Below, in pieces: positions 1 to 23,718 of a stretch of DNA of 23,718 bases. Position 1 is the first letter of the stretch. The number at the start of each line of letters is the position of its first letter. The stretch covers positions 1 through 23,718 of the forward strand of contig CAXIUT010000171.1 of NCBI GenBank assembly GCA_964035545.1, written 5' to 3'. The notes beneath the pieces were generated by a model. It was not told where the DNA came from. It made no database searches and saw only the letters and a program-made list of their open reading frames with translations. This DNA is from Bugula neritina (lineage: Eukaryota > Animalia > Bryozoa). The position numbers were made by a program, and so were the translations under genes.

Positions 1-100
1 CCCAACCCCAACCCCAACCCCAACCCCAACCCCAACCCCAACCCCAACCCCAACCCCAACCCCAACCCCAACCCCAACCCCAACCCCAACCCCAACCCCA
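1..100 (+). repeat. Left telomere, (CCCCAA)n (C4A2, Tetrahymena-type repeat)
   Basis: Perfect hexamer array at the window start. The C-rich strand is 5', as expected for a left chromosome end. It begins 5'-CCCAA. Confidence 0.98.
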
Positions 101-160
101 GAATGAATATTTATATTAGTAGATGATACTATGATATTGGAAATTTAATAGAATGTTAGA

Positions 161-1316
161 TCAGTTTTCTTTCGGCTTGAATACTGAAAAGATTGGAATT
201 TCCAGCACTTCAGCGATATGTTTGAACACAGTTATTATAAAAGTGAAATATTCCACAACTGTGAAGATAGCCACCCCATAAACAACTATAACAGGACTTA
301 TTAAACTTTGTCCAAAAAGAACATAAACTATCTATAAAATGCAATAATACCTGAATAAGTGATACAGAAGACAAAGACAGATGGAGTGAACTGATAGAAT
401 GTCTGCTCAGCCACAGAACAAATTAAAGTATATGTCACAGTGCGTGAAATAGTACAAGCCATAGCTATTCCGATTAAAGTTGAATAGTTATCCACCAAGT
501 TACTTTGAAGAGAAATCAAAGCAAGAGTCGCCACTATCATTGCCATATGAATTAAATCGTAAAAAGCTCTTCCTACTTTCTTAGTAAATTTATCTCCTGC
601 TTGAAATATCACTGAATAAACTTGAACTAACTTAGACAAGACTTACTTGGAGTCGACATTATTATGAGAATAGCTATTATCGAGTTGAGAAGATAAGTTT
701 ATCCAAATATAGTAATAGGAGTAGCCCAGTATGATTGTCCGAAAATAGCTGAAGCGAGGGCTGTTAGCCAGATGATGGCAATACCGTCATCGACTCCATT
801 GACCGTACCTAAAATAAGAATCCCATTTGACCAATATTGACACCATGCACTGATATAGAAGCTTACAATAATGGAGAGAAAAGTCCAAATAAAAAGATAG
901 GGGTTATCAACACATAAGCATCGAGCCATGCCTGCGGTCAGACAAATTACACCTAGAGCATCACAGCCGTGATCCATAATCATTCCCAGTGGAGAAGAAT
1001 TTTGAATTCTACGAGCTTGCTTTCCATCTACATTATCCATCATTTGATAGAAACAGACAGAAAAAGCATATAAAAAGACAGACCAAGTAGGAGCAGGTCC
1101 ATTGAATGGTTTTTGCATACAGATGATAACTGTAGCTATGGCGTGAGTTAAAAATCCAATGATAGTGATGACGTTTGGAGCAACATTTCTCGGCATTCTT
1201 AAAGTTATCCATTAAGCAATAGGGCTCCATAGATAATTATAAGAAAATGCGATATTACCGCCTTTATATTTGTAGGCTCTAATCTTTTCATCACCTTATT
1301 TTGTAACAAAATCCAT
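161..1316 (-). CDS. Choline/ethanolamine phosphotransferase (CDP-alcohol phosphatidyltransferase, CEPT1/EPT1 family), ~370 aa
   Basis: MDFVTKEGDEKIRAYKYKGG...APNVIT...DNVDGKQARRIQNSSPLGMIMDHGCD (CDP-alcohol motif), with multiple hydrophobic helices. The frame requires GT-AG introns at 627-646 (20 nt) and 328-350 (23 nt). Spliced length is 1113 nt; TGA at 161-163. Confidence 0.93.
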
Positions 1317-1402
1317 ATTTAAAACTACTTTATTATTAAAATATTCTCATCAACAAATAATTAATCATAGTCTAAATATCTTTAAAAACAATTTACTACT
1401 AA

Positions 1403-3636: not shown

Positions 3637-3699
3637 TTAAATTATATTTGATTAAACTAATTTAAGATAAGTTATAAAATAGGTACAACTATAAATGAA

Positions 3700-5284
3700 T
3701 CAGCTCACCCAAATACCTTAGTTTTCCTTCAAATTTATATTTGTACTTCCTTTTTTAACCAAAAAGTTAGTCCCAACAGTATACCCTTTTATCGATGATA
3801 TAAACTGTTTTCCATATATTTTAGCTAGTTATAAGTTAGCAACTTTAAATCCTTAAACATCTTTAAATTTAAAGCTTTCCAAAAAAGTTTGTTAAATTTA
3901 GACTTCAAGAAAATCATTTTAAACTCCAAATCCAATCAAATAAATGATTTTAGCATCGAAATCTAAATAAAAAAACAAGATACCCAGCATTATAGGAGAA
4001 GGAGAAACACCCAATAAATTACATTTACAAGTCCAAGTTAAAGAAGTATGCAATTTATCACTAAATTAATCAATGCCGATTGTATGCAATTAAGTCGGAT
4101 TACATTGAATGCGGATATCATTGAGGTAGTTTGATTGATATTGACCAAAATTTTAAAGAATTGGCTATAGGTCAATCAATCTAAAACCAAAATAGCTTTG
4201 TTTGTAGGTAGATCGATCATAAGTATTGTTTTTCCATTTTTTGTTTTGATCTAAATTATATCTGACAAAATTTTATATAAATTTAGTCGAAATAAGAGTA
4301 TTAAATACACTCTACTACTATTAATTGTCTTAAATTTGTTTTTATTAATTATTTTGAAACCTTGATGAAGTCTAATATTCAATACTATTTAAAGATGATT
4401 AATAGTTAAAGTTGTTGATACTTCCTTTCATTGAATGAGAAATTCCTCCTTAAATTTATGCTATTTTATCTGTAGACATATTAAAAGTAACATTCATTCC
4501 ATTGAATTGATACAAATATGATGAATTGTAGGTAGGACTTAATTTCTGCCTGATCAAATTTTAACTAAAATATCCTAATATTAATTCAGCTGTAAATTCT
4601 TCACTTTTCAATAAAGATAAAATAGTTTTGTTCTTGCCTGAAGTATTATATATTTACCTAAATATCATTAAAAATCTACCTGAAACAATTCCATTGTTAA
4701 TCAAATCAAGACTTTTCTTTTATGTTGCGCTTGGACTACCAGAATAGTTCATTTAAAAACTTTTATCATCTACAAATATCTGCACATCTTGAATTTAAAT
4801 CAATCCAGAAATAGTATCAAGTAGCTTTATTATTTATTGAGTACTTTTGTATAGTTGAGATAGATTTTAAGATAGGTAGATCCGTTGTATGTTTTTTTGG
4901 TTGGTAGTTTGGGATGGAAGACAGCTTGATATGTCACTATCACATCTATTGAATCGCTAGTTATTGAGTGATGAGTTGATTATGTACTATCTATTATGAC
5001 AAGTACCTTGGATCAATAACTCGACCTGAACCGTTGTAATGAGTTTTATAAATAAGATTGCTAACTTCAACACTATCAGTTGTAAAATTGGTCGTTCTAA
5101 AATTATTTCTTGATAATTGCGTTGAAGATGCTTGTTTAAAATCATCCATTGGGATATCGAAAGGGACTATCATTTCAGTTACATAGGTGCGATCGATTTC
5201 TAGACTATCCTTAGATGCTAGTTCGATATTAGAGACCTAAATTGTAAGAAACAATATTGTCAGAATGATATCTTTGAATTACAT
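3700..5284 (-). CDS. Hypothetical secreted protein, ~500 aa (BPI/LBP-like fold is a weak guess)
   Basis: Hydrophobic N-terminus (MEFKDIILTILFLTI). Open to TGA at 3700-3702 after removing 20-nt introns at 4987-5006 and 4825-4844. Possible in-frame introns at 3963-3983 and 4638-4679. Family not recognised with confidence. Confidence 0.7.
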
Positions 5285-5357
5285 TTTTAATTATTCTATC
5301 AAATTTAATTTATGATCGAACTTATTTAAAAGTTGATAATAGATAATAGAAATTTAA

Positions 5358-6458
5358 ATGAAAACCATTGTAGTTTTTCTTTTGCTCTTTTTCAATGTTT
5401 GCTGTCAACTCTCAAACTCATAGGTTGATTCTTGTAACTGTGAGAATCAAGGAAAGTGTCAAATTTTTAAAAACACTACTTTTTGTAGTTGTTCTTAAAA
5501 CTTCCTTGATAAAAAATGCTCAATTTCAGGAATGGAACTTCAAAATTAAAAATAAATCATCGAAATCACCAAAGATTACTCATACTTACTTGTTAACCTG
5601 AATTCAAGCCTCTTATATCTTCTATAGATAATACTCTGTCCTAAATAGTTCTCAAATGATACTCGTTTTGAACTATATATCTAGTTTGAAAAGACAGATG
5701 GTTCTCTAGAAAGAGATTTTACAGTTCATTAATTACAAACTTTTATTCCAAAACAAAACCAATGTATTATCTTCAATAAAGTTATAAGTCCTCCATATAA
5801 CAAATATGATGGTAAAGCTCCTCGAATAGTAACTAGAGTCAGGACAATACCCTTCAATAGTGCCTAGCTGGTTTAAAATTAAAAAAAATCACAACCGACT
5901 GTTTCTCAACTTAAAAAAACAAAAAATATATAAAATGATGGTCAAGGTGAAACTTCTTCTGAAAAAGTTGGTGAATTAATCAGATAAGATAGTGAGGAAA
6001 AGAAAGAATAAAATGTCGTAACTATGGAAGTCGTAGCTTTTAAATTTGTTCTTTATGGAAAGGAAGAAATGAAAACAGCACAATTTTTAAGTCTATTCGC
6101 AACTACCTTTTTGTTTGTTGCTTGTCTGGCATGCATATTCTTCCGAAAGGCTTTCCGACACAGAATGAATCGAAATAGCTTCCAAGCCGCTTAACCAGTT
6201 CAAGATATTTCGCATTTTCAGGAAATAATGCCGCCAGTTTACAATTAAAAGAATAATACCTAGGAGGAAGAAGATGAATGCCTGATATGTCTTTTAGGAA
6301 TTTCTTAATCCTATACGAGAACAACTCCTTGCGGACATCTTTTCCACAGAGATTGTTTGGATCAGTGGGGAAGAAGGAGTCTTAACTGTCCGACTTGCAG
6401 AGGATCTCTGGCCAGAGATTCTTTCATTCTTACATAGGAAAACGAATCAACTTAGTGA
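5358..6458 (+). CDS. Signal peptide + EGF-like domain + transmembrane helix + RING-H2 protein (receptor-like E3 ligase), 366 aa
   Basis: Intronless 1101-nt frame. [16 protein letters not shown]; EGF-like [29 protein letters not shown]; [22 protein letters not shown] followed by RK; RING-H2 CLIC-x13[10 protein letters not shown]10-CPTC. Confidence 0.9.
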
Positions 6459-6489
6459 ATGATTATATCGATATATTAAAATACTAATA

Positions 6490-7440
6490 TCATGGTAAAA
6501 ATTCAACTCCCATAACATAGCAAACTTGAGTATTGATAGGTTTAAAGAGCAGTCCGCACCTTTCCTTAGTTATTTTTGAGTGTCCTCTTGGTCTTAACTT
6601 CAACTTAGTAGTTTATCCACTGAAAAGGACTATAGACTACATGGACGAAATAACTTTTCCTTTTGCTTCTACTTATAGCTATAGTTTTGAAATCTCTTCA
6701 TTAATACTTAATTCCAACTGATATTATCCGATCTTATTGGCTTTGATCTTGATAAGAGTCATTTGTCCTTGTAATAAAGTCACTATTTCTGAATTTCCTT
6801 CATATTTCAATGAAAGCTTAGGTGACATATAGTGAATATGGAATCGTATACTCACTGGAGAAATGATATCATCTCTTCCGATAAATTCAGTTAAAGCTAC
6901 GACTGTTTCAATGGCGTCTCCATATTCCTGGCGTCCAGGTTCAAAAGAAAAAGTCAACTAAACCTTATCCCAAGCTTCAATTATAGTCTAGTATTGTCCT
7001 GCAAGAACAAATCCTAATTTTCTATCTTCTTGAATCAGAAAAGGACACTAACTAAAATTAAGACGAATGCGATTGGCAGTCGGATTGCTAAATCCAATAA
7101 CTTCTCTTACAGCTTGGCTTTCTATCAGCTATAGAGATATATTGGTTTTATCGACGAGGAGTAAGTTACTTTAAGTTGACTTTTTTCTTATCTAGAGATC
7201 ATTGGAAGAACACTCTTCACGTCGAACTACATCTAAGAAATCATCATTTTAGATTGAACTTTAATCAAGAGTCTGTTCTATCACCTGATGACCTGATCTA
7301 TACGACTCCTACATAGAAACGTTCTGGCTTATCTGATAGAGATTTACTGCTTTGATCGAAGGGTTGACCATATGCGAACTGTCTTGTTCTAGGAAAGAGG
7401 AAGCTAGTTCTGAGGGTAGTTATTAACTGTTCATTTACAT
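6490..7440 (-). CDS. Hypothetical protein, 316 aa, possibly with ASH/MSP-type Ig-like domain(s)
   Basis: Intronless 951-nt frame ending in TGA. Acidic low-complexity N-terminus, then beta-rich segments EVIGFSNPTANRIRLNF and IEAWDKVELTFSFEP resembling ASH/MSP patterns. Domain call tentative. Confidence 0.72.
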
Positions 7441-7498
7441 AAATTCAAATTTTATCTTATTATTAAACCACCAAAAAGTAATCAAAATAATAAAAAAA

Positions 7499-7547
7499 GG
7501 TTGGGGTTGGGGTTGGGGTTGGGGTTGGGGTTGGGGTTGGGGTTGGG
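7499..7547 (+). repeat. Internal telomeric tract 1, (TTGGGG)n, 49 nt
   Basis: Perfect G4T2 array after an A7 run; ends TTGGG then ATCATTT. No opposing C4A2 tract follows. Confidence 0.97.
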
Positions 7548-7548
7548 A

Positions 7549-8475
7549 TCATTTGCAGGAACAAGTATTTGCATCTAGAAATTTATTAGCAGGACAGATA
7601 ATATTTTAAGGACAGAGACATGAACAAGTCCCTAAGTTCCACTTTTTAGGAGATGGACAATTGCTCTGAGCAACTCCACAGGCTTTTTTCATGCACTTAC
7701 ATATACTATAGTCCCAAATTTGACCCTAAGGACATTCTTTAGAAGCACATTTACACAAACAAGAAGCTGGATCTTGTTCCAATTCTCCAAGGCAAAGTCT
7801 AGTTCTGCACTGACAAGCACAAATATCTTCATCATAGTAGTGAGTTCGAGGGTCGCAGTGAACAAATATTTGATTTTTGCACTTACAGCCGCAAATATTT
7901 TTTTGAATGGCAACTTTATGCTGAGGACAGAAAAAGGAAGAGGAGCATTAGCAAGAACAAGTTTTGTAGTTGTAAAAAGTTGCTGGATTACATGTGAAAC
8001 AATTCGATTGGTCTTGAGTTACTTTAAAGATAATACCCATTCCTCCTTGCTTATTGATGTTAACTATAGTCAAGTTATTCGTTCCACAAAGAAGATGAAT
8101 TTTGATTGTTGTGACTCCTGGAAAACTTACTGTATTACTACCAATAGGTTGATTATTAAGATAAGCGATAAAATAATCATCACCAACTATCAATAAATTT
8201 GCTAGAGAATTTGAACAGTCTGAATGAAATAAACTTTGAAAAACTATTTTATATCCATTAGGAAAAACATTATCTTTTTATTTTGGTTTTATATTGACGA
8301 AAAATGGTTGAGGGTTAGATGTTCCAAGAGGTTTGAAATAATTGTTATGAGAATCTGAAAGAATCACTGTTTAGCTTTCTGAAATACAGGTAGTAGTTGA
8401 TGGATCTGAATATGCTATTATACTATTAGCCACTATATTCACCAGAAAGAGACTCAATATTAATATTTCTTTCAT
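7549..8475 (-). CDS. Secreted Cys-rich protein with N-terminal beta-sandwich-like domain and 7 CXCXC (Balbiani-ring-3-like) repeats, 308 aa
   Basis: Intronless 927-nt frame. Signal peptide MKEILILSLFLVNIVA; IVGDDYFIAYLNN...LLCGTNNLTIV; repeats ending TCSCEC, ICGCKC, ICACQC, SCLCKC, ICKC, TCSCLC, TCSCK*. Confidence 0.88.
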
Positions 8476-8529
8476 AATTTAATATTATAACTGTCATATT
8501 ATCATTTGAATTTGAATTTCATAAAAAAA

Positions 8530-8616
8530 GGGGTTGGGGTTGGGGTTGGGGTTGGGGTTGGGGTTGGGGTTGGGGTTGGGGTTGGGGTTGGGGTTGGGGT
8601 TGGGGTTGGGGTTGGG
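8530..8616 (+). repeat. Internal telomeric tract 2, (TTGGGG)n, 87 nt
   Basis: Perfect G4T2 array after an A run; ends TTGGG then TATTG. Confidence 0.97.
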
Positions 8617-8713
8617 TATTGTTTTAAAAAGGTTATATTTTGTTTTATATTTACTTTATTGTTTTAGTAATCTACTTATCACAGAACTAGTAATAACAAA
8701 TTATTAATAGATA

Positions 8714-11700
8714 ATGGATGATTGTATTTCAAGTTAAACTGATCAAACACCACCAACAAGTAGTGTCCACACTATGAGAACAATGGTACCCATGCGTTTC
8801 AGACTAACCGACCCAAAAGCTCTCTCCCTAAAAAACAATCAAGGAGGAATTCTTAATCAAATAAAAAAAATCCAAATAAAAACCCCAAAAAGATAATAAA
8901 ACGATGATTAAATATTCGAATTAAAGTTTTGTTAACAGCTTAGTGAATAACATCTCCTTGTAGGCAACTAATATCAATTAAATCTGCTCAACTTTTCAGG
9001 AATTACTGATGACTATGCTTAAATAGCAAGTAATTGGAACATTTGTCTATCTTAGAAGATATCATCAGTATCAGTTGTCAGAAGACGTATCTATGATCTT
9101 ATTTAGTGAGAAAGATATTTTTAATATGTGGAAATCTGCTCTACTGCTATGGTTATAAAGACGATTCAATAGAAACACCTCCAATTTTTTACCAAAAAAT
9201 AATACTAAAACATGCAATAGATGCAATATAAACGCCTAAAATAGATATCCTTTTGGTATTTACATCAACCTATCTAACAGTATTTCAAATGTACAATCCA
9301 AATGGTATATTTTAGTTCAATAAATTACTATAGAAATAATATCTTCCAGAATCTAGTAAAAAGTTAAAGATAAAATTTTTATCTCTTCCAAAATAAACCA
9401 ATCATTTTAGTCTATTCTTTTAACATACTGAATAAAGCTAAGAAACACAAAGTTAACAACTAGCAACAACTCTAATCTAACCTAAAGCAAAAGTGACCAT
9501 CTACTCTCTCAGAATTCAATACAATCGACCTAAAGATTATCATAATTGGAAAAATATAAAAGTTCATAGAAATAGGAATCAAATTTAGAGATAAAGGGTC
9601 TCTTAAAATATAACATTACAAAGATGATATCTTTTTGGTATCGGTAGGTTTGTCGATTCTAGCAGCAAGACATAACTATATCATCGATACTATTCAATTT
9701 TTTACATCTAAATCAAACGCTTTCATCGAGAATTTGTCTACTAAAGAACTGATGCATTATTAAAAATAAAATTTTGATCATTACTATTACTCACTAAATT
9801 AGTAACATAAACCTCAAAAGTTTTAATTAACCTGTATTGACTCAATAGCTGTGAGTAAACCTACTCTACGTAGTTCATTTTTTTCAATTAAGCAAATAGG
9901 ATCTAAAATATTATTTTTTTTTCAATAAAAAAAACAAAAAAGTTCTAACTAACTTAACTTTTGGATAGGAATCAGTGATAAAGTTGATAAAAGTCATAAA
10001 ATCAAATAAATATTCTAAGATAACATTGTCTTTAATGAATAAACTACCAAATAAATGATTAATTAAAAAATATAAGCTGCTCTGAAAATTGGATTTACTA
10101 AAAATTAAGCATATCTAGAACTATGGAATCGTTCTTCTAAAAGTAATAAAAAAGATTATTAACTTCTTATTGCAACTGAACACTACTGTATTATAAAAAA
10201 CTAGCTTTAAAAAAAGTTTAGAAGCCACTCTCTTAGCTACCATGAAGTCTTCCTAGTCCTCAGAAGTGCACTTGATATGCTCCAACAAACCATTATCAAT
10301 AACTGTACAAGCGAAGTAGTCAAGCAACTTGCAATGTGTCACTTTCTTTTCTGCAAAGTCTAAATGTTCTAAAAAATATAACAGGCAAAAAACCCATAAA
10401 AGTCTTTAGGAATGACCATAAGCATTCAAGATTACTACTATCTCAACAATATGTAACTTTAGACAACTCTATTCTAACTACTAAACCAATATCTCATCGA
10501 TCGTAAACCAGTTATTATCAATATAAGAGCCTTACTGAGTCAATTTTCTTTAATATTTAGAGTTCTTTACCACATCATACTTCCCAAAATAATTAATCTT
10601 TTTGGTAGTCATTTTCTTCATCTTATACAAACCATTCCTGAAATTTTACCTATTTAAGCTAACACAGATGATAGATATGATATTACAGGAGGACCTTGGA
10701 GCAAAGTTAATCTATCAACTACAAATGATTTCTTATTATTAGCTAATTTGATAGATTTGGATACTAAAGCTTCAATTCAGGAATTTGTTAATTCCAAATT
10801 TTATAAAATTTATCAGTGGAATACTCATGGAGCTTTCAGCGATTCTATCAAAAATATCTAAAAGAAAATAAGTTTAAATAGTAGCTAGGCTATTTTTACT
10901 CAATTATACTCTCTTCTTCATCTATAAATAGAAAAAGCAAAATAAAATTCATGCAGAAAAGCAGCTCATTAACACTAAATATACATTCAAAAAATAATTT
11001 AACACGTATAAACTTACAACCTCTTACCATAAAGATTAAAAGGTAAGTTTCAATTTTATAGCAGACTCTACAACTGCTTCCGTAACTACTACAACAAAGA
11101 AAGAAGATCTTTTGTTAATTTAGAATCATTCTTCTCCCTTTCAGAAGATTAGTTGTTTCTGATGTATTTCAGAAAATAGAGAGCAGAAAAAGGTATATTT
11201 CTACTTAAATAAATCAAACCTATCTATTAGCGATCAGCTGTCAATGGAGATTAGATTTTTCTAAAAAATATGTTTTGGTTTTTCAAGACAGATGAATCAT
11301 CATGGTCAGATTTAAAAATAATTCTCAATAAATTCAACAGTTAAAAATAAGATTTTCATCTGAATAATGAATAAGTATTCGATATAATTGTCAAAGCAAT
11401 CATGTAAAAAGTAAAAATTGGTACTAATGATCCAAATTAACTTAGTTTAAGTGAAGTTATTGCCTATGTATAAAACCTTCCAGTTGAAATCAGAGATAGC
11501 TAACTTCTGCACAACCTAGTTTCTCTGAGAGATTTACACTAGTAATAATAATTACTGAAAACTATCAAAATAAATATGAGTTTGAGATAGATTTTAGATA
11601 GAGGAGAAGAAGTGATCTTCAAAATGACAGAATACTAAATATAAAAACTCAAAGTGTGCAATTTAACAGAACCAAGAGAGATATTGCTTTATGCTTATAA

Positions 11701-14596
11701 AATTTTATCGGATATCAATTATAAACAAAGTAAAATATATCTAGATAAACATATAAGTTTTCCTTTCAAAGCTTTTTTGATTATTCTCATGCAGAAGTAG
11801 TGTTTTATTCCTCTTTGTCAGCAGGTGCTGGAAGATAGCTATCTTAATAAATCATATCAAGTCACTCCTAAATTAATATAAAATACAGTACTTTATCTTT
11901 ATCGGCAAAGACTTTATAAAAGTCCAGATTATTCAAGTAACAAATAATACATTAATTTACTTGTATAATTGCTCAATCATTCAAGTAGTAAAGCAAAGTT
12001 TATAGTTCTTTCATAAGCTTTTGCTAAAATGTTTACTTTTTCTGGTTTTAAGATCCAATATCCATTTTTTATGAGTTATTATCCAACATCAACCTAAGTA
12101 AAAAAGTTAGTAAATGCTCTAAATAGAGAAGAAGTCAAATCAATAGATTATAAAACTTTATTTGATGTTATTTCATGGTTAAAGATTTTAGGTTAGACTT
12201 GTGAAAATATAAAAGAAACAAGGTCTTATATTCCAGGGCACACTAATAGCAGTAAACTTAACAAACAAAATAAACTAAAACATTAGGTGTATATCATATT
12301 CTTTTTAAAGCTATAAAGATAGGAACTCTTCAAAGAGGCACTATAAATAGCCCATCTGATCATTGATATTGACCTATAAAACAATATTTCGAATATCATA
12401 TTTCCTATTTTTCTTTTAGAAGCACTTCAAAGATAACTACTAGTTAGAGCACAATAACCCCTTATAAGATTGATTTCTTACTATTTCTACTCTCAACAGG
12501 AACTCCTCAAAATCATTAATGAACTAACAAATCCAAATAATAAATTCAGCAGCAAAGATATTGACAATTTAATAAGTAAAAGTCAAAACAACAAAAGTAA
12601 CTAGCTAATTTATGACCCGAAAAATCAAGTATTTTCTAAATGTTTTCAAAATTATATCAAATAAATGGATACAGCAACTCAGGTCAAAAAGATAAATCCA
12701 CTAATGTAAACAATTTGGGCGCAAATTCGTGAAAGACGATAAGAGTATGTAACTAATCCTATTTATTCAATTATTTATAGGATATTATTGCATGATCCTT
12801 TCACCCTTGTGGAATATATTTATCGAAAACACAAAGGAATAAATGTTAAATCACTTAGAGCTCTTTTAACTCTTCTTTCGTTTGAAGGTATTTTCAACAT
12901 GGCAGAACTTCTACAAGTAGGAAAATCAATTTTCTAAATGTTGATAGGCAAGTACTTTTCAACTATCGGTAAAAATAAAGATGATTTTGATCCTGAAATA
13001 TACACTGAATAATATCTCAAAGAACAAAGCAAACTAACAGCTTAAGACCTTCTAGGCAGTTCAATTAGAATAATGAACAATAAATATGAATTTATATTTT
13101 GTTATCCTCATTTCTAAAAGAACTAGGAACTTAAAATCAGAGATATTGAGACAATTATCAATCAACCTTCTATCTATATGCAACAAAAATCAGATTAGAG
13201 CTATCTTTTACTCTAAAAGATGTATCCGCATTGGTGGAGTAAAAAGAAAAAGCAAGAAGTGCTGTCTAAATATCTGGCTACATCTTCTCATCTCAAATAT
13301 TTTTTTGATGATGACGATCTTGAATATACTTAGACTCAATTCGATCTAGAAATACCTTTTGTTGTGTATAAGCCAAGTGCTATTTTTTTTAACTAAGTAA
13401 CTGAAAGAAGCTAACTTACTAATCAACTTATATATGCCCAGCAACCTGTTTTTAAAAATGAGAATAAAACTTCAGATTAGGAATCAACTTAATTTTAACA
13501 AGCTTTCCAGCAAGTATTTAAAAAGAATAAACCTTATAATCCTAGTCGACAAGTTAAAATCAAAAAACATTAACAATTTCTAGTACCTGATAATGATTCA
13601 AGGAATATGGATGCTATATTTGAAACAATGTGCATTGAAGGACAATTTTTATCTATGCTAAAAAAACCTAAATTACCTGTAGTAAATATTCACCAATAAC
13701 TTCATCATAGTGAACTTGAATAAAGTGTTATTATGTCTTGTACTGAACAATCATAGGTCAATAGAGTTGAATTATAGCATTCTTAAGAGTACAGTACATT
13801 CAAAAAGAACCAATCTTTCTTTAAAGATGAAGCAGAAATACCAAAACAGTATATTGAAAATTCTATGAATAAATAAAGATCTTTTTCTCACAATAAAACT
13901 TAAAATATATTGGATGCTTTCGAATAAAGTTTAGATTCTAGTAGAGGTATTAGATAATAGATGGAATATTAAAAATTTATTACTTTGAACTCTGAATAAA
14001 AGAATAACTATTTTGAAGATAAAGTTAGATAGATTTATCATTCTTCTGATAATTTGACCCAAAAAATAAGTTTAATTTGGTCATTAAAGCAAAAATTATT
14101 CAGTATGTAGTCAATAGATCCCATAATCTATAAAATAACTTAAAGACTAGGAAATTGTAAACTTACTAAAAGTACTTTAGTTTCAATATAAAGTATAATA
14201 TCTGAAATAGTATTTTTCAAAGATTTCGAATCATCATCTCTTCTTCAATTGATAAAATAAAACGCGAGCGAATATATACTTCACTAAGAGGACATAATTA
14301 AAGTAGGGAACATAGTTGAATATATATTTGATTAGATAAATGCGAAGGAGTAATTTCTTTTGGTTTTTTTGATAAAATATATAAGAAAATATCATTTAGA
14401 CGATTCCAATAAAAATCATTATAAAGATTAGATCATATTGATCCAGCAATAGATAAGGATAGAGACAATAGAAGATAAAATAAGATAATTGATAGATTCT
14501 AAAAATAGAAATTTGATAAAACTTGGTCAAAATATTTAATATTTTAAAAGATATCGACAATAAAATCATAAATTTTGGAATAAAATTAAACATTGA
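8714..14596 (+). CDS. Large (~1950 aa) hypothetical protein; tentative NBAS/Sec39-like tethering factor
   Basis: One frame is free of TGA from ~9500 to 14594. A 20-nt intron lies at 9087-9106, and there is one unresolved +1 frame change between 9497 and 9625. Beta-rich N-terminus, then helical. ALKIGFTKNEAYLELWNRS and LHLIQTIPEILP recall NBAS segments. The CDS is well supported; the family call is weak and the start codon is uncertain. Confidence 0.7.
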
Positions 14597-14719
14597 TAGT
14601 ATCAATTGTCATATTCTATGTATTTCATTATTATTAAGCTATCATTTTGTTGGTTTTATTTAATTTTGTAAAGTTACGTTTTATAGCAACGTAATAAATT
14701 CATAGAATGTTAATATTAA

Positions 14720-15712
14720 ATGAAAAGATAAATCGGAATTATCAGAAATAGGTTTGATAGATTGATTAACATCAAAAAAGAAGCACAAAGGAAAAAGAAT
14801 AGATTCCAGATGGTCGGAAAAGATGATCTAGATTAACATAATAGTACTTCATTATTTATGTAGCTTTCTCTCTAACCACCACCACTTCAGATCCTTCCAG
14901 TCATTCAGAATTTTGTGACTAACTAGAATAAGGATCAAAACAAGCCACACGACTCTTCGAACAGGCTCGAGGAAAAATTATCAAAGTAGCCTAAATACGT
15001 ATTTATCATAAAATTTTAGAAAAGAAAATGAGTTAACTGAGTAAGGCTAGATTTACTTGTTTGAGATAGAAAGAGAATTAGAAATATGACTAAAGTATAT
15101 CTAAATTGGCCAGTGAAGCAACACATGTATGTACTTTATTATTCAGACACTTATGGCAGCTGAGGGGTTTTTAAAACAAATCAGAAAAATATAATCCTCT
15201 TCATTGGCATCCAAAAAAAGTAAATTTTATTTTATTTAGTTATTCAAAATATAGCTTCTTCTCTGGCAGCAGAACTTCAATAAACTAGTAGAAATCTTAA
15301 AATAAAATAGCAGGAGTACTTTAGAAGAGTAAAAGTTTATTAAGGAACATAGAATAGAGCTATGATACTCACTTAGTAACAAAAAAAGACTATGGAAGGA
15401 GAGTGGGAAATGAATTAATAAAAATAATAAGAGGAAGTTAATAAAGGTAAAATAGGAGAATTAGTAAATTCTATCACTAAGCTATCCAACCTATATCGAG
15501 AATTAGGACAGTTTGTAAATGAACAAGGAACAGTTTTGAATAGAATCGATAGTAATCTAGTTCAAACCGAAGAACATACTGTTAAAGCTGTTGGACACCT
15601 CACACAGGCAGATGCAAACGTCAGTAGTCCATTGGCATAAAAAATAATAAAAGGTTTAGCAATCTTGATCCTCATAATGGCAATTATACTGGGACTGAAA
15701 TATATGAAATGA
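14720..15712 (+). CDS. Qa-SNARE syntaxin (syntaxin-16/Tlg2-like), ~303 aa
   Basis: SNARE motif IGELVNSITKLSNLYRELGQFVNEQGTVLNRIDSNL (zero-layer Q encoded by CAA) and C-terminal TM anchor. Introns 14844-14863, 15127-15146 and 15220-15239 (20 nt each), plus probable 14999-15019 (21 nt). Confidence 0.9.
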
Positions 15713-15826
15713 TGAAATGATTAGTGCCTTCTAAATTTATTAAAATCTTGACTAAATATCATAGATATAAATTAATTAAAGTGATTAATCTAAACAATCA
15801 GTAAAGATCATTTATGATTTATTTGT

Positions 15827-17162
15827 TCACACTTTTTTGAAGTTGACTCCAAAAAATAAATTACAAAAGATGCAGAAAAGTTTACTAGGTTTATCTGAAA
15901 AGATTTAATACCAAAAAGTATAGTTAAGTCGATAATCTTGAAGTTAAACAAAGGCAGTATTCTTGTTATCTCTTGCTATTTGTCTGAACATCTCATTATA
16001 CATCATTGTCTTTTGGCTAACTTCTCGTCTATTCGAACGAATCCTACATACATTCAACAATACTGCTATCTATGTTATAGAACTGCAAAGGTTTTAGAAA
16101 AACCTGTATCTTTTTTGTTAGTTGCCTTCAAAAAAGGTTCTTCTACCTGCTTAAAACATACTTAGTAGTCTTTGAATGTCAATTTCTAGTCTTGAATAAT
16201 AACTTGTTATATTTTAAAAGACTAATCAGTTTATTACTATCGACCTTCGTTATGTTTAGCAAATTATCCTATTTTGATAACATCTTCTTGAATGGAAGGA
16301 TCAATATTTTTTTCAAAAATAGAAAAAACATCTCTCGGACAAATAAATCCATCTCCATTTTTATCATACATCATAAATGATACTAAATTAGCTTATCTTA
16401 GATTCATTTGAGAAAACTTTTAACCTAATTTTTAAAATTCTTTGAAGTTAAGATAAGATTTTATATGAAAAAAGTTTAAAAACCAACTCGCAAATATCTA
16501 TCCCATCATATTAGTTAAACTATGCTTCAAAAGATTTTTACTCACCAGTCCAGCTATAATTAACATAAATATACATTACAAATCGACAGCTAACTTCCCC
16601 AATAACAAAATCTTTGTAAAAGCCTGCTAAACTCGACTTGCTTGAACTGCTAAACCTTTATGATTATGAACAACTGATTTTTTTGTTTTTTCTTTTTTAT
16701 TTTACATTTGTGGTTTTTTCTTGAAAAACCAGAAAGAATCTAGTCCTCCAGCATTTTTCTTTTGTTTATTTAAAAACTGACTATATCTTTTAATAGATTA
16801 TTTGTGTTAAGGAATTTCTTGCTATTTTTGTTAAATAAAACTATGCCTATTTTTTCGAATCCTTGGAGATAAGTATTGATTGGCTGTATACCTTTTATTT
16901 TAACAAGCTGAATTATAAACAAAAATACATAATCTTGGACATTTCTAGGCAGTATAAGGAATAATTCTACCATACAATCTCAATAATAAACTTGATACTT
17001 TTATTTTTTCAGACAATGTAAAGAATAAGGAAAGCACCATTTGTTTCTTAGTTCTTACTTTTTTTCATTTTAAAGAAATTAACGAGATTTAACAATACAG
17101 TATTTCGTTTATTTAAAGGAGTCCAGTTTCTCTTCAGTGGGATGCATAAGCGAATTCCTCAT
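15827..17162 (-). CDS. EF-hand-containing hypothetical protein, ~416-430 aa
   Basis: EF-hand FMMYDKNGDGFICPRDVF. The frame requires introns 16979-16998 (20 nt) and 16222-16244 (23 nt). Probable in-frame 21-nt introns at 16908-16928 and 16554-16574. Confidence 0.72.
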
Positions 17163-17275
17163 AAAATTATTTAGTGCAAGTTATAAATAGTATAATCAGA
17201 TGATATAAATCTCTAAAAGACCTAAAATATTTCGTTAAAATAGTAGCATATAAGAGTCAAAGCGATAATATTGGA

Positions 17276-17728
17276 TCACTCATGAGGCTTGGTTTAGAAA
17301 TAAAGCAGAAGAGCTTATCGTAAATAGAATAGTTCTTCTCTTAAATTATGATTTTGTTCTTCTAGTGTCTGCAATCTTTCTCTAACTTCCTCTTTCTTTG
17401 GACTTGATTAAGCTCTTTTTAAATGATCAGATTTTATACTTTTTGTATGATTCAAATTTCTAATAGGACTATCTTCTGCATTTAATTCGCCTTTTGTTTT
17501 TTCTTTATATTTTAAAACACCTTCCGACATAAGCTATTTATATTTTTCTTGAATTTCAGGCAAAAGGCTATCCTTCCAATGATATCTTACTTGAGATCTT
17601 CTATTTATGGATAATAAAGATTTATCGTACCCTCCATCATACAAATGACTTCTTATATGAGATTGTCTGATTGATTTTGTGTGAAGAAGAGGTGAACTTC
17701 TTACAGAGAGGAGATCAATGTTTTACAT
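17276..17728 (-). CDS. Small hypothetical protein with C-terminal coiled coil, 150 aa
   Basis: 453-nt ATG-to-TGA frame filling the gap between neighbours; heptad-like VRERLQTLEEQNHNLREELFYLREAL. Confidence 0.65.
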
Positions 17729-17805
17729 CTGAATTTAAATTATCTATTTAACTATTGATAGTTAATCAATTTAATTTTTAAAATAGAAAAATATAAGTCA
17801 AAAGA

Positions 17806-20305
17806 TCAATTGGTAGCTGTTAAATTAAGGAGGAGAGTTTATGTTCTTTTTTTTAGAAATTTGATAAAAACAGATGTTGATAGATTGTTTCTATTATTCA
17901 AATATGTTTTAAAATATTAACGTAGAGGAAGAGAAGAGGTATCTTTTTACCAAACTTGACTATATTCACTTATTGACTACCATCTCCCGAATCCTTTTTA
18001 TAAAATAGCCTGACAAATTGCTAAATCTAGATATTTTGTATTTCCTTATTATTTTTATTCTTTTTGGGCTTTAAAATATCTTTTTAATTTATTCAAAACT
18101 ATGATTCTTTTATGAATTTCAGCAGGCTAAATAAAATAAAATATACCTCAACAGTTGAAAAGAAATAATTTTGAGTTTCAGGTGTAACTTCTACTTTATT
18201 TTAACAAATGGTTTTCAATATCAATAAAAAAGAATTAGAATATTCTGAAAGGATCTTTAATATATTACTATTTGAAAATTATTAAAAGAAAGTACTTTCT
18301 AAATAACAGATTTTATTTTTTAATTCTTTCATGGAGTCGAAATTCAGTCCAAATGCCATTATTGTCCTTAAAAAGACAACTCTCTGCATCTAATTGAAAA
18401 GAGAAAAAATCTCTTGTTAACAGCTATTAACATCTTTAGGTACTTTAGGACATAAAATTTATTGATTTTTTTAATTGACTTATTATCGAAGATTTAAAAA
18501 CTGTGTTTTTAGAAATAGATATTTTAGATTTTTTATTTATATCTTCATTTTTTTTCAACTTTTTTGCATTAAAAAGAAGTGTTTTGTTGAGTATCTTTCA
18601 TTATAGAAAAAGAAGGTACTGAAGATTGGTTGCTTACTCTGAGATCACTTAGAGAACTCCACTATTAATAATCTTTATAACTTAATTTGATTTTAGCGCA
18701 GTCAATATTCTTCAAATATACCTCAATTTATCTTTGAATAGGTTGATCTAAGACCAATAGTTCTGATTAATTTAGCAATCTTTGTAAATCAAATAAATTC
18801 CAGAAACAATTCCAATTTTAATATTAAAGCAGAATGATATGAAAGTTTGTTATTTTTTTACCAAAAGGTTAAATAAACAAGTAGAAGTTAATAATAGTTT
18901 TAAGATATGATTTCTCTCCAGAAAGGGCAATTAGCTGATGCGCAGGGCAGTGACAATTGAGATAATAGGTCCACCATTTTATTTTAGATCGATTTGTACA
19001 TAAAATAATGGGTTTATTTTTTTTATCATGAAAAGTAATAGTATTGAGAAGTCTGCATATTACTTGTGCTGTTATTTAGTCCTTCTATTTTCTGCATTTT
19101 AGTGTTTGTTTGAATTTTTTAGAATAGTAGTGATATATCTATTTTTGAATTTATTCATTTTTTATGAGTCTTTTTAGTTGCTAGCTATCGATCTAGTTAT
19201 TTTTCTTGAGTAGAGAAGTTGAACCATGATTGGCAATATCAATGAATTTTAATTTCTTTGAAAAACTAACTGAAAATAGTATTTTTATGAAGAGTTTTTA
19301 TAACTTCTTTTATAATTAAGACAACTTATTTTGTATTTTTATACTTCTCTTTTTATTGAACTCCTTAACTATTTTTCTTCTTTAAGATTTACTTGATTTG
19401 ATTAATTTGTGCAACAAGGAAACTACTTTTCATTTTATATAAAAATGAATAAATTAGTTCAACATAAGGTCTAACTACATCTTAGTCTTCCAAACAATTG
19501 AGTTAGATCTCGACCATTTAACTAAAAATTTAATTCTAAATAAAAAATCTTTATCTTTTTGATCAGGTTGAAAATATTAGACCAACTTCTAAATCTAAGA
19601 ATTACAAGCCATACTTTGAGGTATATAAATACCTAAAATATTCTCTATCTGATCACTTTCGATATCAAAACCTAAAATCTATTCCGGTTGGGACTATTTC
19701 ATCACTTGCGACATCAACTTCCAAGTATAGTGAATAGGTGATGGATGTTTGATTCTAACAAAACCATATTATATATTTTTGATACTTATTTTCAAGAGAA
19801 CAAGTCTGCTACATTTCCATTTATATTGACAGGTTTGACAAACAAATTTCTTTTATTTATTTGTTTTTCCGTATATTTTTGAAAAATAGCATTCAGACAT
19901 CATGTATAACTTCGAAGGCAGTTCGAAACATCTAGAATGAATCATTCTCAAACAAATAGAACAACTTATTATGTTCTCAGAAGTAGTCACTTATTAACAG
20001 CATGTCAGACAAGAATGTTTACCAAAACAACTATTGCAAAATTTCATGCTTAATGTGCTTTTATACCAAGCTTTAGAACATTCATAATGAGCGAATCTTT
20101 TGCATTTGGAGCAGATATCAAAGTAGCTTTAACCAAATTTGTATGAACATTCTAAACAGTATTAGTAGAAGTTAGGGAGTTGCAATTGAAACTGAATTGA
20201 ACTTATTAGTTAGGTTTAGAAACTCTAAAGGTCATACTCTTCAGGTTCACTGTTCGAACTTGTTAAATAGTGTTGGGATAATACGCTTAGAGGTTAACTG
20301 TTCAT
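17806..20305 (-). CDS. CHD3/Mi-2/PICKLE-like protein (2 PHD, 2 chromo-like, degenerate partial SNF2 lobe 1, SANT/SLIDE-like C-terminus), ~820 aa; two unresolved in-frame TGAs
   Basis: PHD CLEC..CSKC..AHYEC..CNSC and CLTC..CSIC..IHSRC..CQTC; chromo-like EYGFVRIKHPSPIHYTW and IENILG..KFLVKW; FNEMQRVVFLRTIMAFG; DLAICQAILEKGFGRWESI. Intron 18127-18146 (20 nt). TGAs at 19430-19432 and 18545-18547 are not explained by a typical intron. Confidence 0.75.
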
Positions 20306-20397
20306 TAGCGGCAATAATTAATATATAGCTAATATAGTTAATATGATGGCTTAATATTCATTTTAAAAATATTGATAAGAATTAAATAAGATTTATA

Positions 20398-21365
20398 TCA
20401 AGCTGCCTTCTTGTAGGATTACTTGAATTTTATAAGTTAATTAGTGGTTATTGAATTTGCTATTTTAGGATGGACTAAATTGACAAGTGCTCCTGTAATT
20501 CTATGCATCAAAGGACCATAACATATTTTTGCATTACCCAAACATCTTATAGCTTACTCAGCTGTTTTATCTGGTGTTACATGAGTGAAAGAATTAGTGT
20601 GTCTGACCATAGCTGTACTCACATAAAATGGTCTAACAGTCAAAAAATCAACTTTTTCCTGAACTTCATATGAAATTGCTTGAGAGAAAAAGTCATCAAA
20701 TGTTTTAGTAGCACTATAATGACCAATTTATTTGGTTTATACCATAGCAGCTCCAGAACTGACATTGATAATGGCTGAAAGTTTGTTTCTTTTGATAAAA
20801 TTAGGAAGAAATACATGAGTTAGAACAGCCATTGGAAGGATGTTTACTTTAGCTTCAGTACGGATCTGTTCAAAAGGAATGTTTAAGAAAAAATCTATGT
20901 TATTATAGGAATACCAGGAGTGTAAAATCCAACATTATTGACTAAAATACTTATATCTTTAACTAAAATATCTTTGAAAGCCTATCTATAATCTTTTTAA
21001 CTCTTTAAATTCGACATATCAATTGAGTATATTTCAACTCTAACTTTATTATTTACTTTGGATATGTTTTACTTAGCTTTTGATAATTTTTAAAGACTTC
21101 TACTCACCAAAATTATATTACAGCCTGATTTGGCAAGTTAAATCGCAATAGCTAAGCCGATTCCTTCAGAACCACCAGTTATCAATGCCCATTCACCTCC
21201 ATATCTTTTCTGAATATCAACTTTTTTGATAAAGAAAGAAGAAAATATAGTTCTTAGGAAGTTTAACAGTCGACATGCACCCACAATAAAACATAATATC
21301 AGAAATATTTCCATAGTTAAGCAACTATTTTATTACTAAGTCTGTATTTGTTTCTCCGATTCCAT
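20398..21365 (-). CDS. Short-chain dehydrogenase/reductase, 17beta-HSD12 / very-long-chain 3-oxoacyl-CoA reductase-like, 315 aa
   Basis: N-terminal TM, RYGGEWALITGGSEGIG, SRSLEKL, ILVNNVG, INVSS, catalytic YSATK, VSTAM. One 20-nt intron at 20895-20914. Confidence 0.92.
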
Positions 21366-21498
21366 TATATATTAATATGATCGATAGAGATGTCATATCA
21401 ATCAGTTATTACTCATCGTATAAATTAGATAAGTAATGAATAGATGACAATCGATATATTTTAAAAATATTTAAAATGGTTAAAAATAATTAAATCAG

Positions 21499-22224
21499 AT
21501 GTAAGCTTTATCCAAAGACAGCACAGTGAAGTTGGGTATCTAGCATAACATAAGTTCAATGAAGGTCATTTAGGCTAGATTCGATTTGAACCAGACCATT
21601 CTTTCTATCAAATAAAATATATAAAACAAATATGGATCAGTTGTTTCATTTACTCAACTTAAATTAAAAGATGCTAAAGGTAATTTGATTGCTAGTCTTG
21701 ATTAAGATATGAAAAAATTAGGGTATTATGGTGCTGCGAATGGAATGATACTGTATGTGATGGATTCGAATCCTAATTCAATTCTAAAGCAAATATAATC
21801 TCTTGAAGGAGTTTAAAAATATGTTATGAGTTAGTAAAATTATGATAAATTGCCTTAGAATTTTAGAAAATGGAAACAAAATTTCCTTAAACATCATCCC
21901 GAATACCTCAACTAAAAAAAAATAGTTAATACAAGTAAAATGGATCCAGATTATTTGTCTGAACTTGCTTCTTCAATAGAAGGAGGTTCAAGATGTAAAA
22001 CTTAGTTTGGACCTAGAGGAGAAGTTGCTTTTGTAGGAAAAATAGCTGATTTAGGAAATGGATACTTTGTTGGAGTTAAGTTGGATTAACCTTTTGGAGA
22101 TAGTAATGGAATAGTAAAAGGAGTCAAATATTTTGAAGCTGGAAATAAGTATGCTATGTTTGTTAGGCCTAATACAATTTAAGTTGGAGATTTTCCTGTT
22201 CTAGATATAGATGATTAAATATGA
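21499..22224 (+). CDS. TBCB: Tubulin-folding cofactor B (ubiquitin-like + CAP-Gly), 241 aa
   Basis: KLGYYG..VMDSNP, VEKYVMSEENYDK, CAP-Gly RGEVAFVG..GYFVGVKLDEPFGDSNG..GVKYF, C-terminus VGDFP..DDEI*. An alternative start at ATG 21476 with a 20-nt intron (21479-21498) would add one Met. Confidence 0.95.
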
Positions 22225-22337
22225 TCTTTAATTTCAAATTGTTAAAATTCTCATAAATATTTGTTCTAGTAATTGAACTCATATTAAATGAATAAAGAAA
22301 ATATCTTAATGATATTAAATTGAATAATCATCTCATA

Positions 22338-22419
22338 GGGGTTGGGGTTGGGGTTGGGGTTGGGGTTGGGGTTGGGGTTGGGGTTGGGGTTGGGGTTGGG
22401 GTTGGGGTTGGGGTTGGGG
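22338..22419 (+). repeat. Internal telomeric tract 3, (TTGGGG)n, ~82 nt
   Basis: Perfect G4T2 array ending TTGGGGG then CTTTG; abuts coding sequence of the TLDc gene. Confidence 0.97.
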
Positions 22420-23613
22420 GCTTTGCACATACTTCTTAGGATACCTGCAATTATAAGTGGAAGGAAAGTTAGAAAATGATTTTTTACTTATATGACACTA
22501 ATCACAGATGAAGAAGTCAAAATAACCAAAAGCAGGGCCAATAGTTTTATTGCAATATATCAATTAATTTTAACTCTGAGGGACCATTTTCTGTTTCAAA
22601 TCCAATGAAAATATATAAGATTCTTTAGCTTAATCTGAAACAAGTCCTTTCTAAATAGAATTCCAAGTATATTTAGAATATCCTCCAAAGGTTTTACCAT
22701 ATTCAGTTCTAACCAAAATAACAGTATTAGGGATATTATCACATTTTTAGTGAAATGCAGCAGCGCTAAATCCATTTTACGATGCTCGATATAATAGTTG
22801 CCAACCTTTTGGCTTACGAATAGTATCTTTAAAGAATTTTATTTGATCTTATTTCAGTGATTTAAGAATAGTAGAATCTGTTCCTATTTATTTAAATTTT
22901 AATTCTGAATCTTATTTCTTTTATTTCTTCTTCTATTCCTTCATCTTTTTCTATATCTTTATTTAAGACTCTTTTTCTTCTTTTATTTTTAGCTAAGAAT
23001 TTTATTTTATTCTTGATTCACTAATTTGACTATTTTCAATGTCAATTTCTTTAGCTAATTATTCAAAAAGTAATCTTTTTAAATTGATCATTTCCTCTAC
23101 AATAGATTCCATATTTTTTCTATATCTTTAAAGAAGTTGAACAGCATGTTATTTTGATCTTTAATTATATTTCATCAAACTGTTATATAGTTGTTTTGAT
23201 TACTTTCCTTTGAGATAGAGAGGATTCTTTTTCTTGTATACTTATTCAATAACTTTCTCTTCTTTCAAACTCAAACCATATTTACCAATACAAGCTTGTC
23301 CATTTTGCTGAAGTTGTCTGATGAAATTATTTTCAATATCAGACATATTGAAAATAAATTATTTCTGGTTGTCAACTCTTGAATTGAGTTGTTGAGTCAA
23401 AAACTTGAATTTTTTGATAGAACAAGCAGGATGACTTTCATCGCAAAATTTACACTAATCCTCACCACACATCAAAGATGGATGAGTACAACCAGAATTG
23501 ACACACATCCTTGTTATCTTGTTCTATCCCTTACAGTAAAGTTCAGGATCAGATACTGTATGTTTACTGAACATGGCTTCCATTAAAGCATCACTTGGAA
23601 TCTAAGCCTACAT
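22420..23613 (-). CDS. TLDc-domain protein with N-terminal Cys/His cluster and coiled coil; 3' end replaced by telomeric tract
   Basis: 398 intronless codons: MCVNSGC..LMCGEDECKFCDESH; LLYRASENGFSAAAFHEKCDNIPNTVILVRTEYGKTFGGY; SYIFSL; GPAFG; SFSNFPSTYN. The usual final TLDc strand (F.v.EyEVf) is absent and the frame runs into the repeat. Confidence 0.88.
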
Positions 23614-23643
23614 CTCTTATGATATTTTTTATCTTAATATAAA

Positions 23644-23718
23644 GGGGTTGGGGTTGGGGTTGGGGTTGGGGTTGGGGTTGGGGTTGGGGTTGGGGTTGGG
23701 GTTGGGGTTGGGGTTGGG
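23644..23718 (+). repeat. Right telomere, (TTGGGG)n
   Basis: Perfect array at the window end, 30 nt from the TLDc start codon; ends ...GGGTTGGG-3'. Confidence 0.98.

Follow-up and report, generated by a model that had tools for sequence, protein, structure and literature searches.

A Ciliate Contig with Internal Telomere Tracts in the Bugula neritina Assembly, Most Likely a Head-to-Tail Chain of Chromosome Pieces

The window analyzed here is a whole unplaced contig of 23.7 kb (C180), read-like in length, from the genome assembly of the bryozoan Bugula neritina. It carries a telomere at each end and three further perfect telomere tracts inside, and the question it raises is whether these mark one chromosome that can end at several places or several chromosomes that came to be joined. 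The contig is most likely a head-to-tail chain of a complete 7.5-kb chromosome (1-7547) and the fragments 7548-8616, 8617-22419, and 22420-23718. As to how the chain arose, we lean, with slightly better than even confidence, towards a chimeric concatemer formed outside the living nucleus and retained by the assembler.

Ciliate Origin of the Contig

C180 originates from a ciliate contaminant that reads UAR as Glu, inside a 216-Mb assembly whose host uses the standard genetic code. The host chromosomes of this assembly measure 16-36 Mb, and their HSP70 genes are intron-rich and in the standard code. The assembly also contains about 300 small AT-rich contigs, with in-frame TAA and TAG inside their HSP70 and SDHA genes. 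The code of the ciliate is of the peritrich type (NCBI table 30), with UAA and UAG at conserved Glu positions and TGA as the sole stop. In an alignment with the host SDHA, four UAR codons of the ciliate SDHA fall on Glu, and conserved motifs (TEGCRGEGG, GE.A..SVHGANRLG, and EAP) contain three of the four; the remaining eight aligned UARs of this gene fall in weaker or out-of-frame alignments. TGA alone closes the open reading frames (ORFs) of the ciliate DNA in the ORF lists. The large chromosomes were also considered as a possible ciliate germline for their G4T3-like arrays, a reading rejected on their standard-code, many-intron HSP70 genes and the absence of the window DNA. The ciliate units have C4A2 telomeres of about 50-105 bp whose 5' end is precise (CCCAAC), and complete chromosomes occur down to about 5-18 kb; for peritrichs, a literature search turned up nothing on how large macronuclear chromosomes are.

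Telomere Tracts, Segments, and Genes of the Window

The features on which the argument rests are listed below by position.

1-100, C4A2 on the + strand: left terminal telomere, 100% perfect, starting CCCAAC
101-7498: body of segment 1, between two tracts, with ORFs and Pfam matches
about 331-1316, - strand: CDP-alcohol phosphatidyltransferase gene of segment 1 (ORF and Pfam)
5358-6458, + strand: membrane RING-H2 protein gene of segment 1 (ORF and Pfam)
7304-7308: HinfI site (GACTC), at which a contig of run X2 leaves the window (loose end 7309) into CCCAACCCC...
7499-7547, + strand: internal tract 1, G4T2, 8.2 units, 100% perfect; right telomere of segment 1, directly abutting segment 2
7548-8529: segment 2, a terminal fragment of 1 kb from another chromosome
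7549-8475, - strand: gene for a Cys-rich secreted protein, the single gene of segment 2, its stop codon 1 nt from the joint and without a 3' trailer
8530-8616, + strand: internal tract 2, G4T2, 14.5 units, 100% perfect; right telomere of segment 2, directly abutting segment 3
8617-22337: segment 3, a 13.7-kb fragment with no telomere at its start, which lies in AT-rich non-coding sequence, 97 nt ahead of an ATG
21499-22224, + strand: tubulin-cofactor-B-like gene (CAP-Gly domain) at the end of segment 3, complete, with a 113-nt trailer to the tract (ORF and Pfam)
22338-22419, + strand: internal tract 3, G4T2, 13.7 units, 100% perfect; right telomere of segment 3, directly abutting segment 4
22420-23643, - strand: segment 4, a 1.2-kb terminal fragment with a TLDc-domain gene (weak Pfam match), start codon at 23613
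23644-23718, + strand: right terminal telomere, G4T2, 100% perfect; the contig ends ...TTGGG

A preliminary description of the locus had reported the positions of the internal tracts, their G-rich + polarity, and their perfection, all of which were confirmed; in shuffled sequence, 0 tract matches are expected. It had also stated that none of them is followed by C4A2 and that they are not the inverted arrays of head-to-head fusions. The sequences beyond the tracts bear out the first point, and inverted G4T2/C4A2 arrays were found neither in the window nor in the whole 216-Mb assembly. With TGA as the only stop, the distance from ORF end to tract is 58 nt (7440 to 7499), 54 nt (8475 to 8530), 113 nt (22224 to 22338), and 30 nt (23613 to 23644), close to the spacing given earlier (54-113 nt at the internal tracts, 60 and 30 nt at the true ends). 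The evidence supports each internal tract as a genuine chromosome end, because the subtelomere before it looks native, the last gene before it is complete, its length is terminal-like, and its end phase is that of the contig termini. It equally supports the earlier claim that 1-7547 is a complete two-telomere chromosome: with both telomeres and several ORFs, this piece can stand as a macronuclear chromosome of about 7.5 kb. Positions 7296-7446 of segment 1 are covered natively by record 20 of run X3.

The native contexts and second copies of all segments were searched for in the assembly, which returned the contig alone, plus TLDc paralogs of 65-78% identity. Neither segment 2 nor segment 3 has a second copy elsewhere in the assembly, and no match to a 33-mer taken at the beginning of segment 4 was found in public metagenome contigs.

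One Locus or Several Chromosomes

The preliminary description had interpreted the tracts as optional telomere-addition sites of one locus, whose nested isoforms of about 7.5, 8.6, 22.4, and 23.7 kb would have been collapsed into a consensus. The part of this interpretation that takes the tracts as chromosome ends stands; optional addition within a single locus does not. The idea gains from the position of each tract, after a complete gene at a true-end-like distance, and from the alternative fragmentation or telomere addition known in Oxytricha (PMC3558436) and Blepharisma (PMC9942806). The window shares with such systems, and with the telomere healing of Paramecium (PMC13076228), telomeres whose position relative to genes varies, small chromosomes, and addition near gene ends. 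In those systems, however, the site is where molecules end, and longer isoforms are repeat-free there, whereas the window has its repeats inside, followed by a truncated fragment of a different chromosome.

Further observations stand against nested isoforms. A long isoform would carry no repeats at an unused site, and an overlap assembler inserts none, yet full tracts are internal in the contig, and no repeat-free spanning sequence was found in the assembly. The DNA is not collinear at 22419/22420, where the 3' trailer of the complete CAP-Gly gene lies on the left and the inside of the TLDc gene on the right. The latter gene reaches the joint without a stop, its last 30-40 codons or so, conserved in seven paralogs, being missing; the missing C-terminus was searched for to the left of tract 3 and is not encoded there. 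The same type of joint truncates SDHA elsewhere. The only ciliate SDHA (contig C231) lacks its start codon and presequence: its sequence sets in right behind a tract, about 8 residues ahead of the FAD-binding GxGxxG motif, and an intact copy was not assembled. A frameshift in this gene was examined as a sign of single-read quality and discarded, as it is a 20-nt GT..AG intron.

The coverage steps proposed as a check in the preliminary description do not agree with nesting either, since depth does not decrease monotonically from the left end in run X1 or in run X2, a second sample of the same species. In X2, depth is about 65-129 over segment 1, 0-2 over segment 2, and 33-59 over segment 3; in X1, it is about 17-28 over segment 1, then 0 to 20 (0 over 7570-8160), and 4.4 over segment 3, all of these values coming from contig data of the runs, in which gaps prove nothing. 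Nested isoforms are thus considered very improbable, and the evidence favors the alternatives that the same description had mentioned, namely telomere ends joined to other DNA and library chimeras.

Joints across the Assembly

Joints at which a complete telomere is followed by non-telomeric DNA recur throughout the ciliate contigs, where at least 259 were found. The pattern of three TTGGGG units, TTGGG, and a non-G base was counted 228 + 31 times, compared with 12 + 3 counts of the control, and the polarity of the joints relative to contig orientation is 228:31. A canonical (lexicographic) orientation of contigs, considered as the cause of this bias, is unsupported by the first letters of other contigs. 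Most small contigs share the chain layout (for example C10, C11, C14, C50, and C100), and most chain contigs measure 14-33 kb, about the length of one read. Long pieces are joined in this way too, in contigs of more than 60 to more than 360 kb (C41, C66, and C105). About one third of the telomere tracts in the assembly are internal.

The internal tracts end in TTGGG or TTGGGG in all eight joints read directly, in the phase seen at contig ends, and the ciliate contigs start with CCCAAC in eight cases out of ten and with CCAACC in the other two. This shared end phase indicates that the ends were natural ones, complete and blunted, when they were joined. Of 100 joints, 41 continue with A, 44 with T, and 15 with C, which equals the background composition, and neither an added A nor T microhomology is visible in that first base. 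The fragment starts have no common motif, and their composition is that of the background.

The uniform end phase and the large number of joints could suggest that the tracts are programmed, either by telomere joining during macronuclear development or as germline-encoded tracts. The repeated borders in C11 could be read in the same way: one tract is flanked on either side by one and the same satellite of 29 nt, nearly in phase, and TCAT follows both joints of this contig. Against such a program, however, stand the motif-free fragment starts of background composition, the coding sequence that these starts cut, and the different piece depths in the second sample (X2). A programmed origin therefore seems hardly credible.

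A restriction-site (Hi-C-like) origin was also evaluated for the joints of the window. Joint 1 reads G/ATC, but among 100 joints TTGGG is followed by ATC in only 5, where about 2.6 would be expected. Since DpnII, HinfI, and MseI starts are not enriched among the 100 listed joints and none of the eight inspected joints fits cleanly, the joints of the window are not Hi-C products. Ligation of that kind is seen at a telomere end in run X2, which a GATC/GATC joint at 11109 identifies as a Hi-C library. Its joint at 7304-7307 marks no chromosome end but is a Hi-C proximity ligation, in which a HinfI end, once filled in, was coupled to a natural telomere end (CCCAAC); it follows that the natural telomere ends of this ciliate ligate in vitro as blunt ends.

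Formation of the Joints outside or inside the Nucleus

Each fragment starts at an internal, non-telomeric point of another chromosome and ends at the natural telomere of that chromosome. At each joint, the 3' G-strand end of a finished blunt telomere (...TTGGG, the complement of CCCAAC) is attached to the internal point without added bases. We infer a non-programmed event, by end-joining or 3'-end extension, that most likely took place outside the living nucleus while the DNA or the library was handled. Rare long chimeras could pass size selection, and an overlap assembler would probably favor them, with the short true chromosomes contained as sub-reads; at low coverage, no competing assembly path would be available. 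Unrelated pieces with complete natural ends, as technical chimeras should have, are what the end phase, the truncated genes, and the unequal depths indicate. In addition, the 228:31 polarity is unexpected for duplex chromosomes read at random, and so points to a technical, strand-aware step.

The alternative is that the chains are real in the macronucleus, where broken ends would be joined to blunt, briefly unprotected telomeres, or a nascent strand would switch templates past the chromosome end. The products would be two-telomere concatemers with interstitial tracts, either low-frequency outcomes of repair or chromosomes that propagate clonally. We regard this as unlikely, although to be taken seriously, and several observations speak for it and against an artifact. 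Technical chimeras should have random partners, including host DNA and telomere ends, and more host than ciliate ends should be present in solution; yet the joint partners inspected were ciliate DNA only, as expected within one nucleus, with the proviso that assembly filtering could hide ciliate-host chimeras. Free ligation of naked ends should also yield some head-to-head joints, as in Oxytricha, whereas the assembly has no telomere-to-telomere joint beside the telomere-to-internal ones, a result that fits if fusion takes a deprotected telomere and a reactive break. We can name no library step that gives strictly telomere-to-internal joints. To reach the large internal share of the tracts, chimeras would have to form at a few percent of the ends or be strongly selected, and the joints between long pieces are a further difficulty for an artifact. 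Random chimeras do not predict the C11 satellite on both sides of a tract, which, like the TCAT after both C11 joints, is in line with joining in vivo, as is C41, with tract polarities of -,-,-,+,+ outward from a central two-telomere piece. Record 7 of run X1 is collinear across the joint 8616/8617 at a mean depth of 4.4, which could mean several reads, but the sampled joint words do not confirm such support. In a 64-nt joint query of which only three words were sampled, no run, X1 and X2 included, contains two or more; one word, probably telomere-like, occurs in eight unrelated runs, with neither X1 nor X2 among them.

Other results are difficult to reconcile with joining in vivo. The polarity bias is not expected of duplex molecules, the chains hold truncated copies of SDHA and TLDc genes with no intact copy assembled, and piece depths differ at least 4-fold within one supposed molecule. 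Moreover, most chain contigs are about as long as one read, and no independent sample shows a joint, at least by the three words sampled.

Comparison with Known Systems and Implications

Interstitial tracts that arise from telomere-to-break fusion or break repair are usually short, degenerate, and fixed in the germline, with collinear flanks. The tracts described here resemble the products of telomere-to-break fusion as one-directional tracts between non-telomeric sequences, for which a telomere-to-telomere fusion is unnecessary. Unlike known interstitial tracts, they are perfect, of full telomere length, and present by the hundreds in one somatic genome, mostly between unrelated flanks. Another parallel comes from PacBio reads of Oxytricha, in which multi-chromosome chimeras with embedded telomeres were treated as artifacts and filtered out, the filter covering embedded tracts of either orientation and head-to-head telomere-telomere patterns (Lindblad et al. 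2019, PMC6937825). As in those reads, full-length tracts lie here within read-length sequence, with unrelated chromosome DNA on their flanks; unlike them, all joints are telomere-to-internal and none is head-to-head.

If the joints are technical, as we favor, the approximately 300 contaminant contigs are chimeric chains that should be split at their internal telomeres before any analysis of genes or synteny. The case would also illustrate what happens when reads exceed the true chromosomes in length, namely that rare chimeras among them are promoted by an overlap assembler. The underlying chromosomes are of interest in any case, as those of a ciliate with UAR as Glu, small chromosomes, and precise telomere ends. 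On a more tentative note, the macronucleus of this ciliate of peritrich code might regularly join blunt telomeres to internal breaks of other chromosomes, or extend onto them by template switching, producing replicating two-telomere concatemers with hundreds of perfect interstitial tracts and never a telomere-to-telomere joint, a proposition that we hold to be doubtful. If true, such a process would add to the somatic genome rearrangements of ciliates one that is not described so far, and real joints would imply that a polyploid somatic nucleus possesses a polar pathway for joining telomeres to breaks.

Ciliate Origin of the Window

The window spans all of contig C180, in an assembly that comprises 216 Mb in 321 contigs. 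Long (TTTGGGG)n-like end arrays are found on its large sequences (C1, 35.6 Mb; C2, 33.6 Mb; C6, 16 Mb), whose HSP70 genes have many introns and zero in-frame TAA or TAG, whereas HSP70 on small AT-rich contigs contains in-frame TAA/TAG codons, up to 35. This contrast identifies the window as DNA of a ciliate contaminating the host assembly. Throughout the window, TAA and TAG are read as sense codons, with TGA as the sole stop. Four UAR codons of the ciliate SDHA gene (L029, C231:17170-20985) stand opposite Glu in its host counterpart, and three of these positions fall in conserved motifs. The genetic code is of the peritrich type, which makes the contaminant probably a peritrich. Peritrichs are common epibionts.

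The sampled ciliate contigs are mostly 14-33 kb long and open with CCCAAC or CCAACC. A 20-nt GT..AG intron in SDHA (L029 1455-1474, C231) points to tiny introns in this ciliate. Tandem duplications of 1.8-3.8 kb with 78-96% identity, probably tandem gene families, were observed inside ciliate chromosomes (L012 of C14, 2444-9446; L023 of C250, 2020-9583; L019 of C150, 1268-5887). Host chromosome ends consist of (CCCCAAA)n arrays, of >10 kb on C6 (L014, C6:1-10000) and ~6 kb on C2 (L016, C2:1-10000), where 1 kb of (AAAATTT)n precedes the array; a TTTGGGG-type telomere is unusual for a standard-code, intron-rich eukaryote. The small contigs C200 (L022) and C300 (L024), with a GC content of 0.45-0.49 and a first 10 kb without telomere tract, do not resemble the ciliate, nor do they clearly belong to the host; they may stem from bacterial cobionts or be host DNA left unplaced.

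Telomere Tracts and the Sequences That Follow Them

Telomere tracts of the window (0 matches in shuffled window sequence) and the gene following tract 3
1-100, C4A2 tract, left terminal
7499-7547, + strand, perfect G4T2 tract (tract 1)
8530-8616, + strand, perfect G4T2 tract (tract 2)
22338-22419, + strand, perfect G4T2 tract (tract 3)
22420-23643, body of segment 4, carrying on the - strand a TLDc-type gene that runs into tract 3 without a stop
23644-23718, + strand, perfect G4T2 tract

The internal tracts separate segments 1-4 (1-7547, 7548-8616, 8617-22419 and 22420-23718). They are present and perfect as claimed in the preliminary description, which was also right that tracts start shortly past gene ends (30-113 nt beyond the ORF at each tract, with TGA-only stops) and that no C4A2 partner follows, since non-telomeric DNA lies immediately 3' of each internal tract. 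Its distinction from head-to-head telomere fusion, a different structure, extends to the whole assembly, where no G4T2|C4A2 joint was found.

The same description took the tracts for optional telomere-addition sites of one locus existing as nested isoforms, an inference contradicted by segment 4, which starts mid-gene. Seven TLDc paralogs (C45, C272, C283) extend ~30-40 conserved residues past its break point, and the absent codons, sought left of tract 3, are not there; that side holds a complete CAP-Gly, cofactor-B-like gene with a 113-nt trailer. The TLDc profile match of segment 4 is weak (a 31-residue piece, profile positions 48-76 of 170). The sole gene of segment 2 has its stop codon 1 nt from the segment start, and segment 3 begins in AT-rich DNA, 97 nt upstream of an ATG. 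The assembly contains a single ciliate SDHA, on C231; it opens right after a tract, ~8 residues before the GxGxxG motif and without a start codon. ATGAWTAY, in the inward reading direction, may be a subtelomeric signal: it occurred within 120 nt of 6 of 19 natural ends vs 2% of background windows, and at 0 of 8 fragment starts (sites at window 101-120 and in the subtelomeres of L013, L017 and L018). The tracts therefore close genuine chromosome ends, and the piece behind each one starts somewhere arbitrary inside a different chromosome.

Comparison with Sequencing Runs

Depth and collinearity were read from contig-level data, in which coverage holes prove nothing. In X1, probably the source sample, depth was ~17-28 on segment 1 and 4.4 on segment 3; in X2, another sample of the same study with a variant strain, it was ~65-129, ~0-2 and ~33-59 on segments 1, 2 and 3. 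These depths are not nested, which, within that limit, contradicts isoforms with a common left end. Nested isoforms thus fail on three counts: collinearity, the repeats that the long form carries, and depth; programmed and isoform models are jointly very improbable, and the window represents a different phenomenon from alternative fragmentation in Oxytricha, Blepharisma and Paramecium.

On either flank of tract 2, one X1 record runs collinear with the window; the tract is an 87-nt perfect repeat, which a graph built at k=31 would not be expected to traverse. A joint search at 8587-8650, with three words sampled only, found no run, X1 included, with at least two words. X2 is a Hi-C library, with a GATC|GATC joint at 11109 (DpnII site, 11106-11109) and, within 7304-7309, a HinfI end that was filled in and ligated at 7307-7309 to CCCAACCCC, a natural telomere end; the latter independently confirms that the natural C-strand 5' end is CCCAAC and ligates blunt. 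X3, from a different study and with a different organism label, gave native coverage of 7296-7446.

Joints Across the Assembly and Their Origin

Contigs C10, C11 and C14 are organised like the window, with a C4A2 start and then several + strand G4T2 tracts. The joint pattern (three G4T2 units, TTGGG, non-G) has 228 forward and 31 reverse matches, against 12 and 3 matches of the reversed control pattern. In the joints read (three in the window, and C10, C11, C50, C100 and C231), the tract ends in TTGGG or TTGGGG, identical to the contig end and complementary to the contig-start phase, and the base just past the joint follows background composition. Long contigs have mixed polarities: C41 reads -,-,-,+,+, outward from a central two-telomere piece, and C66 (>367 kb) and C105 contain pieces flanked by telomeres pointing inward. 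Some joints lie 96-236 nt apart (C87:10082/10178, C78:18153/18300, C104:11393/11629), so that some chained pieces are barely more than subtelomere and telomere.

C180 is a chain of one whole chromosome and three terminal fragments, each behind a complete blunt telomere. We lean towards a technical origin of the joints. Chimeras with embedded telomeres are already known from Oxytricha PacBio reads (PMC6937825), which the window resembles, with an unusually strict polarity. The 228:31 polarity bias is unexpected for duplex chromosomes. Chain contigs are mostly as long as a read, truncated genes lack any intact copy in the assembly, segment depths are unequal, and an overlap assembler drops short true chromosomes as contained reads while retaining the longer chimeric read. 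A simple ligation artefact, however, accords poorly with the absence of telomere-telomere joints, the exclusively ciliate DNA among partners seen, the large share of internal telomere tracts, the joining of long pieces to each other, and C11. There, a 29-nt satellite with a 58-nt higher-order unit forms a 2.2-kb array right after an internal tract (L011, 5118-7553), and three degenerate copies precede the tract closely. The phase differs by only 3 nt between the two sides, and TCAT directly follows both C11 joints. These five points fit polymerase run-off with template switching, or joining inside the ciliate nucleus. Real telomere-to-break joining in vivo seems to us less likely than a technical origin.
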